This document shows, one piece after another, positions 41,154-62,479 of a stretch of 64,000 nt of DNA (the stretch's first letter is position 1; each line of letters begins with the position of its first letter). The notes beneath the pieces were generated by a model that was not told the DNA's origin, searched no databases, and saw only the letters and a list, made by a program, of their open reading frames with translations. The position numbers and the translations under genes are program-made. This stretch comes from Calcarisporiella thermophila CBS 279.70 (lineage: Eukaryota; Fungi; Calcarisporiellomycota): the NCBI RefSeq assembly GCF_041956535.1, contig NW_027192197.1, forward strand, positions 1,178,341-1,242,340, in the 5' to 3' direction.

Positions 41154-41558
41154 ATGGTAATTTATAGTGTAACGGTCTTCATCCTTTTTCTCTCTGCTGT
41201 TACAGTATCTGCTGTTCCACAGCAAGATTTTTCACAACACCAATTAACGGAGCATGCAACTGAGGGCTTATATGGTGGTGTGAATGGTTACGAAAATGAG
41301 CTGAGCAAACGTGACGTAAGAATAGGGGGCAATAACATGGTGGAAGGGGATCAGCAGATAGGAATGGTGAAGTATCCTTTTGATGGAGTGGTTGTGAAAA
41401 GCTGCTAACTCAAATACCATTAGAATAAGATTGACAAAGCAGCGAGTAAAGAAAGTGGCTCCGGTAGCTTGAACCAGAATATTCGTAACGAAGAATCAAA
41501 GAGTGCTCCGGCCCAAACTTCCCCGAGTGCGACTCCTTTCATCAATTCACTGTCATGA
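41154..41558 (+). CDS. Small secreted protein A (115 aa) carrying the shared N/Q/G-rich module plus a short S/T/P tail; exons 41154-41366, 41424-41558
   Basis: Signal peptide MVIYSVTVFILFLSAVTVSA; KR site; intron GT 41367, branch GCTAAC, TAG 41423; mature part DVRIGGNNMVEGDQQIGM|NKIDKAASKESGSGSLNQNIRNEESK...SLS*. Confidence 0.8.
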
Positions 41559-49892: not shown

Positions 49893-50873
49893 ATGAAGAT
49901 CTGCACACTAATTTCTTTGGCTACCCTTTATTTCGTGACTTTCTTCGATGCCGCGAACTTTGTTCAAGCTAACCGTATCCTTGTAGAGCGACAAATTAAA
50001 ATCAATGGAAATAACAGTGTTGAAGGAAATCAACAAATTGGAGAGGTAACTTTTTTTGGAAAAAATTCTCCAACTCATGAGTTGTTTAACTGTGTTTGAA
50101 CGAATGATTAGAACAATATTACAAACTCAACTAATAGTGGAGACAATAGTGGTTCTTTGAATCAGAATATCAATGCGGGAAATGTTGATGAAGATGCGGA
50201 AGGGGGCGGAGATGAGGTATCAAACCAAGCATCAAATCAGACTCAAGTTAGGTCGACTGGAGACACTTATAGGAATTTTGCAGCACTAATGGAAGCATGC
50301 AAACAAGACAACACTATTAAGTACTCCATTGACGCACAGGAAAGAGGAGGGAATATGATTGTTCTGGGTATCCACGGTGGAAATATTGAATTGGGAACGT
50401 CCGAAATAGTTAGAGCCATTGCAAATTATGCAGATAAGCCGCAGCTACCATACTATTTGTTTGAGTCCCATGTCTCACCGAGTAACAACCAAAGGAGATA
50501 TAATTTACATATAACGTCAACACGTTTTGACGAACCTAATGCGATCGAAATGACCACTAGGAAAACTACTGTCATCTCTATCCACGGCGCAGCTAACGAA
50601 ACTAATATCGTATATATGGGAGGATTAGATGAAGATTTGAGCAGGAAAGTCGGAGGTCAGTTAAGAAACGCAAATCTCAGTTTCAAGTTTGAGGTCAACT
50701 TCAACCCACCACGTGGGTTGACTGGGAAAGAGCCGAACAATATCGTGAACAAGGGTCGGACTAGAAAAGGCACACAGCTGGAAATAACCCGGGGGATGCG
50801 AAGAAGGCTTACTCGGAATCCTACGGATCTTTCGAAATTTGCATTGGCAATTAGAAAGGCTTTAGACCAATAG
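49893..50873 (+). CDS. Secreted protein B (304 aa): shared N/Q/G-rich module fused to a poly-gamma-glutamate hydrolase domain (PghP/DUF867 family); exons 49893-50045, 50112-50873
   Basis: Signal peptide; ER site; QIKINGNNSVEGNQQIGE|NNITNSTNSGDNSGSLNQNI; acidic linker; then DTYRNFAAL, IHGGNIELGTSE, LHITSTRFDEP, ISIHG, YMGGLD, GKEPNNIVN, GTQLEIT. TATATAAA at 49821. Confidence 0.88.
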
Positions 50874-58148: not shown

Positions 58149-60268
58149 AAAGTACAGGTATCCACCGCCCAAAATCAATGATATTCTGACCGGTTCGCAG
58201 AAGCAAAAATATTTTCCAAATTTTGACTTGCAATCTGACTATCAACAAATCAGAATCGCAGAACAGGACATACTCAAGAAAGCTTTTTGAACTCACTAGG
58301 GACGCTATGAATTCAAAGTACTTCCATTCTGTTTATCCAATGCTCCCGCCATTTTTACGACTCTTATGAACAATATCTTTCACCCTTTACTCGATGAATA
58401 GATTATTGTATACTTAGATGATATCTTAGTATACAGTATGAATATTCATAAACACCAAAAACATCTTCGCCTAGTTCTTCAAATTTTTCGTGATAATAAA
58501 TTATATGCCAATGCCGGTATATGCGACTTCCTTTGCATTGCAATTGAATTTCTTGGTCATGTCATTACCCAGAGGGAATCCAAGTTAATCCCAAGAAAAC
58601 CATTGCATTTCGACCTTAGCCACCTCCTCACAACATCAAGAATCGGTTTTAGAACTTGCCAATCACTAGAGGAAATTCGTTAACAACTTCATTTCAATTG
58701 CTTTTCCTCTTACTACTCTCCGCAAGAACACTCCTTTTTCCTGGACCCAGAAATGCTACAACGCTTTTGTTCAGATTGTTCTGTTTCATAGCTACACTTT
58801 CAAGCCAGCAGCCACCACATTATTCTTTATGTTATACACATGTATTTCCTAGTTAATTTTACTAGCAATAACCATACTTTTTCTCGGAAATTTCTTTGAT
58901 TTGCCAACTGAACATTTACAAATCGACTCTAGTTACAGAAATCATAACAAGATCTTCTTCATCACTTTAAACCAATAATAGTTAATAATAAAATATTTTG
59001 TGGTTATTTGGTCTTTAGAATCGCATGGATACTAACTCTCTCTTGATTCATCAAAACTTCAACTGGTCGTACCAATTAAACGATTTTTATCAATATTCTT
59101 AACAGATCCTTTATCCTTAAATGGATATGCGAATTTCCAAAATTTTAAGAATACGGGTATTCTAGAAGAAAAGACAGTACACCATTGATGAAGCATTTTG
59201 ACAATATTTTGACGTCATGTTGATGTGAACATATTCATAAAGGAATCAAATAATCAAAATTAATGATATTCAGAGGAACAAAAGTAACATGATAATATTA
59301 TCGGATTTTTTTATGTGTTAATATTCAGATTACATATCATGTTTGAGTTTAAGGAATTAATCCAGGCTTACATAATACCTGTAAGGCTTTACACCAAAAT
59401 GATTAGTTGTGAAAGGAAAAGTTGATACCTTTATAACATTGAGCTATATACTATATTCACCCAGTTGAATTTATGAACGATGTATTAGCTGTTTGTCGAT
59501 AATCCGAGAATATGACGATTTTTCTAACCAGTCAAATTCATTTTATACTTGTTCTCGAATACCCATTATGTGAACGGCGAGTCACAAGAATCTTCCAACT
59601 CTGTAATTTAGAACTTTTAGTATGGGTTAAATAATATGGCTTTTTACTGGTTCCAAGTTTAAATAAAGAGACACGAATCCAAGAAATTCATCAAATAGAG
59701 TCGAATAATATCCATTAATAGATAAATTTATCTGGTATAAGATTTTCCAATCAGCATATATAATTAAATCAAATTTGAATGTGCCTAAGAAGGTTTGCGG
59801 CTACTCGAATTTATCTTGGTGAACCATTCACACTTTTGTTCTGATAAAGAGACCAAAAGAGGGAATTTTATGGTTTAACCTTGAGTGTATGGATTTTCTG
59901 TATGGAACTAAAGGGTTTAATGAGGTTTAGATCATCATCAAGTGGTGTTTATAAATTTTAGTCTTCTAGAAGGCTAGGTTGTAAAACAGAAACTGCGAGA
60001 TGATGTAGTCAGGATATTTTTCTTATTTCTCATGATTATATGTCATTTTCACGTTTCCACAAGAGAAGCAACTATCCTGCATCAAAACCCTTCTTGACCA
60101 TTCTCAGTCATTCTTCTTTGTCCAACCTTTTTAACTGGAATATATATATAAGAGGGATTTGGGCCCTATTTTTTTTGCTGTATTAAAGCTGATAGCAATT
60201 AACATCAGTTTCCCTACGACCATTACACAATCTATATTTAATCTGATTATCCTTTCAACCGTTTCAAG

Positions 60269-61483
60269 ATGAAATTATCTGGCTATGCAGTTTGGTTTAC
60301 CTGCATAATACTTATTGTATCCTCAATAACTCAAGCAACCCCTCTTAAGAGAGAGATAAGAGGAGTAGGACCCAATGGATTGGTAGATAAGGAAGCGGCA
60401 AATAGTCCAGAAGCGATTAGGAGAAATGAAGAATTGAATGCCATATTTAGGAAAAAGCATCCAGAGTTTTTCCAGAAAGCGACCCCCCATGAGCAAAAGA
60501 AAATGGAAAGTTGGATCACTAAGATAGAGGATATCGCAGTTAGATATGGTCTTCCAGCAGTAGGGAGTTTCTTAGGAGAGCTTATTGATCCTGCAGGAGG
60601 TGGTGTAGCAGGAGGATTATTGGGAGATACCTTAGCGAGATACGTGGCTGTGAAATTTGGATTGGAAGAACACTTTGACACATCCCTACCGGTTGTCGGT
60701 CGCATCGGAAAATTAGCAAAAGCATTGGAGGAAGGGGCTGGTGTTGTTGGCGAATTGCCAAAGGGTTCGGCTACCCCAGGAAAAGGAGCGACAGCACCTG
60801 AGAATAACGAAGTCCCAGTAAATCCAGAAGAAAATGAAGTAATTCCCCCGGGTGAAAAGAACGGAAACGAAGCAACTGGTAATACTGAAGTAGAAGGAGA
60901 GGCTTGCTTAAGGAAGAGGGGCTCTGGTTCTCTTAATAGGCGGCAGATGAACTGTAATCCAAATCAAGCAGGACCGAGCGGAAATCGACCCAATAAAGCA
61001 CGACCGGGCCAATCGGTTGAAGCCAAGAGTGCCCTTAAGACCTACTTTCAAACCGGGTACAAGAACCTAATATTTCGAGCTTCACAAAGTGCCCACGAAA
61101 TGATAAACCACATGCGCGATTTTGGCCTAACTCCAAATGAACCAACAGATCTTCCGGCCAATATCGAGTTGAATAATAGGAGCTATACTACGGCCGTGCG
61201 TAGCTATCTTGAGAATCTCAAATCGAATCCTGGAAATGTAGCTTATTTTGAAGGCAGATATCAAACCGGGACGAAACTGTTGAAAGGAGGCAAAACTGGA
61301 CCAAGTCAAGTCGTGAGTGCACGGTTCATAGTCGAGGATGGCGGAAAAAAAGGTATAAAGCTGTTTGCAATCGGAAAAGATGGAAATAGAGCAAATGAGC
61401 TATTGTATGCCGGAAATATATCGAGAACTAAACTTGGAATTCTTGAGGAAAAAGGCGAAGTTTGGTTTGGAAAGAAACCGTAG
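60269..61483 (+). CDS. Secreted toxin-like precursor (404 aa): signal peptide, glycine-zipper region, acidic linker, Cys-dibasic-Cys loop, putative colicin-D-like RNase C-terminus
   Basis: Intronless ORF with signal peptide and KR site; GSFLG...GGGVAGGLLG; LPVVGRIGKLAK; CLRKRGSGSLNRRQMNC; basic C-terminal domain with HMRDFGL. TATA-like run at 60141. The ORF is secure; the function is inferred. Confidence 0.7.
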   Translation: MKLSGYAVWFTCIILIVSSITQATPLKREIRGVGPNGLVDKEAANSPEAIRRNEELNAIFRKKHPEFFQKATPHEQKKMESWITKIEDIAVRYGLPAVGSFLGELIDPAGGGVAGGLLGDTLARYVAVKFGLEEHFDTSLPVVGRIGKLAKALEEGAGVVGELPKGSATPGKGATAPENNEVPVNPEENEVIPPGEKNGNEATGNTEVEGEACLRKRGSGSLNRRQMNCNPNQAGPSGNRPNKARPGQSVEAKSALKTYFQTGYKNLIFRASQSAHEMINHMRDFGLTPNEPTDLPANIELNNRSYTTAVRSYLENLKSNPGNVAYFEGRYQTGTKLLKGGKTGPSQVVSARFIVEDGGKKGIKLFAIGKDGNRANELLYAGNISRTKLGILEEKGEVWFGKKP

Positions 61484-62479
61484 ATAAAGTCATTTTTGTT
61501 GTGTAATTTAAATAAACATTCAATTAGGACAATAATTAATTCTTTATCTTATAAAATCAATACCTCCATATCCTTTTGTAAAATTTGAATTGGATGAGCA
61601 TGTGAAATTTTAAAAAGAAAAATAAAATAGAGGGCTCACACTAATACTTGAAATATACTTCAACTAATTTAAATAAGATTAACTAAAACACCGAGTAATT
61701 GAAATTGAAAGTAATGGTATATTATAGCTTTGCGAATGTCTCATATACAAGGTTTTCTGCAAATCTAAAATGCAGAGGATAGAATATACGATACCTAAGT
61801 TACATTTGTTAGTTTCAGAGCGAAATAGCGCATTGTGATTGGTTAATGATTTTTAGTAGCCAGTTAAAATGCAGAATTTTGCTTAAAAATAAGCAAAATA
61901 ATCCGAATAAGCCTCCAATTGTTACTCTCCATTTTCTTTCCTGCAATATCGATTCAAACTGCAAGAATCGCGAAAGAACACATAATTTCTCATCTTCATC
62001 AGCACTTGCCTTTGTATTTTACTGGGTGATATCTAAATTCTCTTGAAGCTGGTTCTCTAAGATTTCCAATGGGGATCGGGAGAGTATATCAAAGTTCCAG
62101 GCTAGATATCTGGAAGGACTTGTCAGCTATTGATAAGTGAGTTTGAGGAACATACAAGTAAAGAAAGGTAAATTGTTAACTTCAGGTACACGAGCGCTCT
62201 GATAGGTAAGTCTTCCCTGCTCAAGAAAGCGAGACTTATATTTGACTGCTTCTGAAGAATAATTCACAGAGATGAAATTTAACTAGTAGATTACTGTACG
62301 AGACCAATTTTTTTGAATAAAACTTTTTCGGACATTTATACCCAAAGGTTAAGCTCGTGAATTTAGTATATTTACGTAAATAGAAGAATGCATATTTAAA
62401 GAAAATATTTCAACACGAAAACCATGGAGATAAAGACAATAGTAGCTTATTTATTTTGATATTCCGTCGTCATACTAAC

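Follow-up and report, generated by a model that had tools for sequence, protein, structure and literature searches.

Several described toxins resemble, each in part, the locus reported here. In the bacterial ribonuclease (RNase) colicin D, residues K607, K608, H611, D614 and S677 are essential, and Tox-ColicinD domains have already been recorded in fungi, namely in Ascomycota (Zhang et al. 2012, PMC3482391). Colicin-like BECR domains are defined by the order of a pre-alpha element, an alpha helix and strands beta1-4, with the catalytic histidine in pre-alpha (bioRxiv 10.64898/2026.08.28.747851). In the killer toxin K28, Kex2p cuts the precursor to yield an alpha/beta pair joined by a single disulfide (PMC5666379). 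We analyzed a window of 64,000 nucleotides (the whole stretch of DNA under study) from Calcarisporiella thermophila CBS 279.70 (contig NW_027192197.1, positions 1,178,341 to 1,242,340) and focused on an open reading frame (ORF) at 60269-61483 on its forward strand. Its product possibly joins the layout of K28- and diphtheria-type nicked A/B toxins to the chemistry of colicin D. The best explanation, which we hold tentatively and at somewhat less than an even chance, is that the ORF is a genuine gene, specific to its lineage, whose secreted pre-pro-protein product matures into a two-chain toxin with a colicin-D-like RNase chain.

The colicin D relationship had been proposed from motifs ascribed to that family. 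Starting from Colicin_D (PF11429) domains of four bacterial genomes, two of Enterobacterales and two of Actinomycetota, we collected their relatives, which gave a comparison set of 77 proteins, reduced to 27 at less than 80% identity. The motifs proved genuine: these domains carry KKF-KH-A-x-DFG[VI]T, G-T-Y-R, G-E-F-[VI]-S-G-W-[KR]-L and a final L-x-x-G-x-L. The ORF and the parts of it that bear on this comparison are as follows.

60269-61483, forward strand: whole precursor ORF, intronless, with an ATG start, 404 codons plus stop and no internal stop.
61019-61480, forward strand: basic C-terminal domain, residues 251-404, candidate colicin-D-like (BECR) RNase, by Atlas neighbour, predicted element order and profile alignment.
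61109-61132, forward strand: H281-M-R-D284-F-G-L-T block, aligning to the catalytic H611...D614 block KH-A-x-DFG-V-T (roles from PMC3482391).
61184-61216, forward strand: Y-T-T-A-V-R-S-Y-L-E-N, in the predicted core helix, aligning to family F-E-R-A-V-R-S-H-V-D-D.
61247-61261, forward strand: F-E-G-R-Y, at the end of the first predicted strand, aligning to family I-N-G-T-Y.

The Hxx[ED] block was found in the expected place, H281 and D284 of N-H-M-R-D-F-G-L-T being aligned to it by HMMER, hhalign, MAFFT and profile alignment. Three collinear blocks, HxxDFG[VL]T, AVRS[HY][VL][DE][DN] and GxY, were recovered by both MAFFT and a semi-global profile alignment. A custom hidden Markov model (HMM) built from the 27 members and run with filters off matched residues 273-292 only (2.9 bits, E = 0.007 for one target); this score was equalled by 29 of 5000 composition-matched shuffles and by 5 of 622 natural decoy segments, giving an empirical p of 0.006-0.008. 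Over the whole domain, the semi-global profile score was 8.5 compared to -20.7 ± 6.5 in shuffles (z = 4.5), and it was equalled by 3 of 6000 shuffles and by none of the 622 natural decoys. Because the family had been chosen for this very motif, the hypothesis and these p-values are not independent of each other.

The strongest support came from structure. For this exact protein a model is available in the ESM Atlas, with a mean predicted local distance difference test score (pLDDT) of 0.57. When residues 245-404 were used in an Atlas structure search, the first row was a cluster whose members carry Colicin_D (PF11429) in 78% of cases and WXG100_2 in 65%; at a template modelling (TM) score by query of 0.55, the alignment took in 108 residues over 251-400, approximately the whole length of the colicin-D domain. 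The second row was BrnT, another BECR toxin. We give this neighbour the most weight because the search was blind to the idea being examined. An Atlas feature search returned bacterial toxin-sized proteins, including Ntox35 and EndoU_bacteria, which we treat as leads only. AlphaFold2 (AF2) single-sequence models of residues 235-404 (pLDDT 47.7) and 248-404 (pLDDT 43.8) both placed a helix at 273-284, which contains H281, a second helix at 304-319, strands at 324-332, 348-357, 363-369 and 378-384, and a terminal hairpin. This predicted order of elements fits the colicin-like BECR topology, in models whose pLDDT is below 50.

Several results weigh against this assignment. PF11429, whose curated cut-off is 25 bits, returned no row at E ≤ 10 in the whole protein or its C-terminal part, and was silent on the whole genome in six frames. 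The hhalign probability was 2% (P = 0.02), and within the small set of 77 colicin-D proteins pairwise BLASTP and phmmer gave no match with an E below 0.03; no sequence method reached significance at database scale. The one motif by which the family was picked accounts for most of the alignment signal: with the motif block removed, the remainder was marginal (z = 1.8, p = 0.05), and the alignment of the strand region in the second half shifted with gap penalties. The original prediction remarked that the nearby lysine and the tryptophan are apparently not kept, and this was correct. E277 and M278 occupy the K607 and K608 columns and N280 that of K610, and no alternative alignment places Ser or Thr at S677 or Trp at W679, in a region where the alignment depends on the gap penalty. 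Of the five colicin D essentials, the His and Asp are kept, the Lys pair is not, and the Ser is apparently not. Finally, the AF2 models found no BECR match in a Foldseek search against the PDB, in two VIA-align wide searches or in an Atlas shape search, and the language model behind the Atlas may have keyed on the same motif. The null searches with the AF2 models say little because those models are poor.

Comparison with the colicin D/BECR fold, as had been proposed earlier, gave a divided answer, with the top Atlas neighbour on one side and the hhalign probability and the AF2-based Foldseek search on the other. The wider claim of a colicin-D-like C-terminal domain is likewise upheld in part: the H/D block, the whole-domain profile score and the Atlas neighbour argue for it, whereas the silence of Pfam and the three apparently lost essentials, together with these structural nulls, argue against it. 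On balance, we consider it slightly more probable than the contrary that residues 251-404 form a diverged colicin-D-like BECR domain. We do not file the protein as a PF11429 member, because the profile test failed and three of the five essential residues are apparently not kept.

Set beside colicin D and the Tox-ColicinD proteins, the fungal protein shares a basic, toxin-sized C-terminal domain behind a linker. It has HxxDFG[VL]T at the H611...D614 position, followed in the same order by the AVRS and GxY blocks, and a predicted pre-helix, helix and at least four strands, with a Colicin_D cluster as its best Atlas neighbour. It differs in lying below every sequence threshold, in lacking the K607/K608 pair and apparently S677 and the Trp, and in having longer loops between motif and core helix and between strands 1 and 2, as well as approximately 20 extra C-terminal residues. 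It carries a eukaryotic signal peptide in place of a bacterial export module, and has neither ImmD nor any other neighbouring immunity gene. The reported fungal colicin-D cases are in Ascomycota, whereas the host here is an early-diverging fungus.

The A/B-toxin side of the proposal concerns the layout of the precursor, in which all the elements named earlier (signal peptide, KR site, glycine zipper, acidic linker, cysteines and basic domain) are present in the translation.

60269-60337, forward strand: predicted signal peptide, residues 1-23, ending T-Q-A and holding C12 (sequence reading).
60338-60352, forward strand: short putative pro-peptide TPLKR, residues 24-28, with a kexin-type K27-R28 followed by Glu (cleavage predicted).
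60353-60778, forward strand: N-terminal domain, residues 29-170, candidate binding/translocation ("B") part, a role suggested by its position.
60545-60664, forward strand: Gly-rich hydrophobic stretch, residues 93-132, with G99xxxG103 and a glycine zipper, G111xxxG115xxxG119.
60686-60721, forward strand: LPVVGRIGKLAK segment, residues 140-151, read from the translation, a candidate segment with no established significance.
60779-60901, forward strand: acidic P/E/N-rich linker, residues 171-211, isoelectric point (pI) 4.05, from the translation.
60905-60955, forward strand: C213...C229 loop, a predicted disulfide-held nicking loop with RKR (215-217) and RR (224-225) inside.
60956-61018, forward strand: N/P/G/Q-rich basic spacer, residues 230-250, predicted disordered (AF2 pLDDT ~30-40, no secondary structure).

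The grand average of hydropathy (GRAVY) across residues 1-24 is 1.26. The N-terminal domain (29-170) is near-neutral, with a pI of 6.0, and residues 230-404 have a pI of 9.9. No DNA tandem repeat was found in the linker.

Cysteines occur only at positions 12, 213 and 229, and C12 lies within the signal peptide, which leaves C213 and C229 as the sole mature pair. The loop C-L-RKR-GSGSLN-RR-QMN-C is exactly where it had been described, with 15 residues between the two cysteines, including RKR and RR. When two cysteines were placed at random on the otherwise fixed sequence, 0.3% of trials put them no more than 25 residues apart with two or more dibasic sites enclosed, a post-hoc figure. The genome encodes six loci with a kexin/furin-type P-domain, able to supply a loop-cutting protease, and hence a processing enzyme is available. 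As an A/B-style precursor the protein was thus described correctly in its layout (a signal, a dibasic loop between the only mature cysteines, and kexins in the genome), from which secretion, cleavage and the disulfide are predicted. By analogy with K28 and the furin-nicked bacterial A/B toxins, C213 and C229 may be joined by a disulfide and the loop between them cleaved.

Six P-domain loci are an unusually large proprotein-convertase set for a 28-Mb fungal genome. They include G000:C5:1110032-1112179, G000:C7:757755-759762, G000:C17:258385-258645 and G000:C19:558104-558436; two pairs of loci lie close together on opposite strands, and two in-frame stops are present in one of the loci. The GSGSLN of the loop (60920-60937) resembles (S)GSGSLNQNI/NSGSLNQNI at 41457-41474 and 50148-50162, where SGSLNQNI-type ends close a tag common to two other secreted-protein genes in the window, directly after an intron-like break. 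This six-residue recurrence could be chance or a shuffled exon edge.

A secretory signal combined with basic sites in a loop that a disulfide could close, as in K28, is present at the level of sequence. Like K28 and K1, the precursor has a signal peptide, a short pro-region with a dibasic end, internal dibasic sites and one predicted inter-chain disulfide. Unlike K28, to which it has no sequence or fold similarity, it is chromosomal, would lose only approximately 8 residues by excision and ends in GKKP, whereas K28 is encoded on a satellite of double-stranded RNA, has a large glycosylated gamma segment removed and carries an HDEL(R) retrieval signal. In diphtheria toxin, Pseudomonas exotoxin A and the Shiga toxin A chain, a basic protease site lies in a short disulfide-closed loop between the enzyme and delivery parts. 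The candidate toxin likewise has basic sites in a short cysteine-bounded loop, but its domains are unrelated to those of the furin-nicked toxins. Its order is the reverse of that in diphtheria toxin, the enzyme candidate being C-terminal, and nicking would be performed by the producer's kexin rather than by the victim's furin.

The same loop could be ordinary processing in a non-toxic secreted or cell-surface protein, acting in adhesion, wall remodelling or signalling or as a pro-peptide precursor, with the likeness to colicin D a product of chance. The eight dibasic sites scattered over the protein, the recurrence of GSGSLN at the end of the tag of other secreted proteins in the window, the modest and partly circular sequence support for colicin D, and the orphan status of the protein are all in keeping with this. 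Against it, a lone disulfide loop whose two dibasic sites sit exactly between two domains is the specific layout of nicked A/B toxins, the top structural neighbour among millions of clusters was the family independently picked from the motif, and the protein has no wall-anchor signal and no repeat structure. We regard a non-toxic role as improbable, at slightly less than one chance in four.

The N-terminal domain invites a different view of where any activity resides. The secreted, kexin-processed protein might act through its Gly-zipper domain, either as a toxin (membrane-active or pore-forming) or as an antimicrobial, and the C-terminal domain would then be not a nuclease but a targeting module, a nucleic-acid- or polyanion-binding module, or a chaperone of the N-terminal part. 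The GxxxGxxxG zipper and the hydrophobic stretch 93-132 are present, and the colicin-D catalytic set is incomplete, with no equivalents of K607, K608 and S677. However, the stretch, with both Asp and Glu in it, does not make a clean membrane helix, no pore-former family was matched in the Pfam, NCBIfam and Atlas scans, and the HxxDFG[VL]T match and the Colicin_D structural neighbour would be left unexplained. Taken together, these two suppositions also appear unlikely, and slightly more so than a non-toxic role. As for the stretch itself, Gly/Ala-rich hydrophobic stretches lie directly upstream of the colicin-D domains in three of the bacterial loci (L122, L123 and L124), a further resemblance to colicin-D proteins; this likeness is an analogy, with no alignment supporting homology.

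The protein is otherwise an orphan. Scans against Pfam, NCBIfam, PHROGs, PADLOC and PDB sequences gave no significant match, nor was any similarity to ribotoxins detected. A word search returned nothing beyond the protein itself, and HMMER/phmmer against 1.84 billion representative proteins found no relative other than itself. In that search, a bacterial TPR kinase (P0002) was spurious, since it matched residues 29-64 through eight repeats. Among the metagenome contigs scanned, a single match (L129) covered 33 residues of the signal-peptide region, and on the contig, which is unrelated, it lay in a non-coding frame; after its rejection no relative was left. Weak rows for Rhomboid_N (E = 0.034-0.15) and a phage tail PHROG (E = 0.065) were taken as noise, as was Drosophila Turandot A (PDB 8pbv), which matched 81 residues (41-121; 60389-60631) without significance (E = 0.14); this match runs through the helical region into the beginning of the Gly-rich stretch. 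For the N-terminal part, sequence, family and fold scans found no relatives, and an Atlas search with residues 28-170 returned nothing related, PT-TG appearing only at a cosine of 0.76.

The protein had also been called polymorphic-toxin-like, and this part of the original prediction did not survive. A search of its own 28-Mb genome for paralogues with the same N-terminus and different C-termini returned only the gene itself: no paralogue was present at E ≤ 1, the gene is single-copy, and the N-terminal part has no detectable kin. The term "polymorphic" does not apply, because there is no set of proteins with a shared N-terminus and alternative tips. The Enterobacterales genome G215 provides a contrast. 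Its loci L122:709-2071 and L124:694-2072 are near-identical for the first ~250 residues and then bear different colicin-D-type tips, and behind each lies its own small acidic ORF (102 and 95 amino acids), which differs from the other and overlaps the stop codon, as is typical of textbook polymorphic toxin/immunity pairs.

No immunity gene adjoins the fungal ORF, as had been stated earlier, and no ImmD (PF09204) match was found anywhere in the genome. In the 1.6 kb downstream, the sole sizeable ORF is a 66-amino-acid frame at 61846-62046, which lies in AT-rich spacer, shows no visible gene features and was considered as an immunity candidate by its position only, and the next gene noted downstream encodes a secreted knottin-like peptide on the opposite strand. 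The absence of an immunity gene is expected for a toxin made within the secretory pathway. Ribotoxins and K28 have no separate immunity gene, and self-protection as in K28 is conceivable here.

We placed the ORF at G000:C7:1238609-1239820 of the 28.2-Mb assembly by searching its own genome. It lies in the last quarter of the window, where the surroundings are AT-rich (GC content 0.33-0.39) and littered with retroelements. Two putative signals, both read from the sequence, flank it.

60140-60153, forward strand: TATA-like run ATATATATATAAG, putative core promoter, 116 nt 5' of the ATG.
61511-61516, forward strand: AATAAA, putative polyadenylation signal, 28 nt 3' of the stop.

In such a place the frame could be a non-working gene, that is, a young, decaying or never-expressed ORF in a transposon-littered region, taken up by a gene caller. 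The low-GC setting with dead retroelements adjoining is compatible with this, as are a GC content at third codon positions (GC3) of 0.35, well under that of most long ORFs in the window (0.44-0.79), and the lack of a homologue among the 1.84 billion representatives or in the metagenome scan. Nevertheless, an open frame of 404 codons in DNA of 38% GC is very unlikely without selection, the GC of the ORF (0.44) is well above that of its flanks (0.33 and 0.37), the signal peptide, domains and linker form a coherent whole, and the TATA-like run and AATAAA are sensibly spaced. We consider a non-working gene very improbable. A low GC3 is common to the candidate toxin ORF and the poly-gamma-glutamate hydrolase gene at 50112-50873 (0.40), and for these two it could indicate an AT-rich accessory compartment or foreign origin.

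If the ORF is a real gene for a two-chain toxin, its product would follow a defined path. In the endoplasmic reticulum (ER), the signal peptide (1-23) would be removed and the C213-C229 disulfide formed. Kexin in the Golgi would then cut behind R28 and, inside the loop, behind R217, R225 or both. The products would be an N-terminal chain of approximately residues 29-217, bearing the Gly-zipper stretch and the acidic tail and perhaps aiding binding or membrane passage, joined by the single disulfide to a basic C-terminal chain of approximately residues 226-404. The latter would be a highly diverged ribonuclease of the colicin-like BECR group, in which the pair H281/D284, where the helix preceding the core helix ends, may act as H611 and D614 do in colicin D. 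Reduction of the disulfide in the target cell would free the nuclease for its presumed toxic action, and the producer would be protected by confining the protein to the secretory pathway, so that no immunity gene would be needed.

Two further groups of secreted fungal toxins resemble this scheme in part. The zymocin-type toxins (K. lactis gamma-toxin, PaT and relatives) kill by cutting transfer RNA (tRNA; PMC11848437 and bioRxiv 10.1101/2024.10.25.620242), and their nuclease subunit is disulfide-linked to a carrier subunit. Unlike the fold proposed here, their nuclease fold is unrelated to colicin D and has no bacterial homologues; they are borne by killer plasmids or nuclear relics and possess a chitinase-like carrier and an immunity gene. 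They are known from Dikarya only. Ribotoxins (alpha-sarcin of the RNase T1 group, barnase-like BECR) are, as is proposed for the candidate, secreted basic fungal RNases of the BECR superfamily that need no immunity gene, but they are single chains with several disulfides in the catalytic domain, no delivery domain and a different His/Glu/His set.

The most specific form of the proposal is that this mucoromycote, an early-diverging fungus, possesses a chromosomal, kexin-nicked and disulfide-linked A/B toxin without an immunity gene, in which a colicin-D-type anticodon nuclease of bacterial ancestry, diverged beyond the reach of sequence search, serves as the warhead behind an unrelated Gly-zipper delivery domain. 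In this full detail we consider it rather unlikely. Fungal colicin-D domains and Kex2-processed killer toxins have each been described already; what would be new is their combination, together with the host lineage and the altered catalytic set.

If the reading fails, the gene is an ordinary lineage-specific secreted orphan. In addition, the protein lets one judge how reliable language-model structure neighbours are for true orphans. If the reading is true, a tRNA-cutting warhead of the colicin-D family is joined to a Kex2-cut, disulfide-linked two-chain format, which have not been seen together before, and the protein would provide a small, tractable model of how a nuclease passes through a target membrane. 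A nuclease with a new catalytic set might also emerge, with the His and Asp kept and the Lys pair lost. The finding would extend bacterial-type RNase toxins to early-diverging fungi and would add to zymocins and ribotoxins a third way, independently arrived at, of making secreted tRNA-cutting toxins in fungi, with bacterial toxin domains rebuilt in a eukaryotic secretory A/B format.

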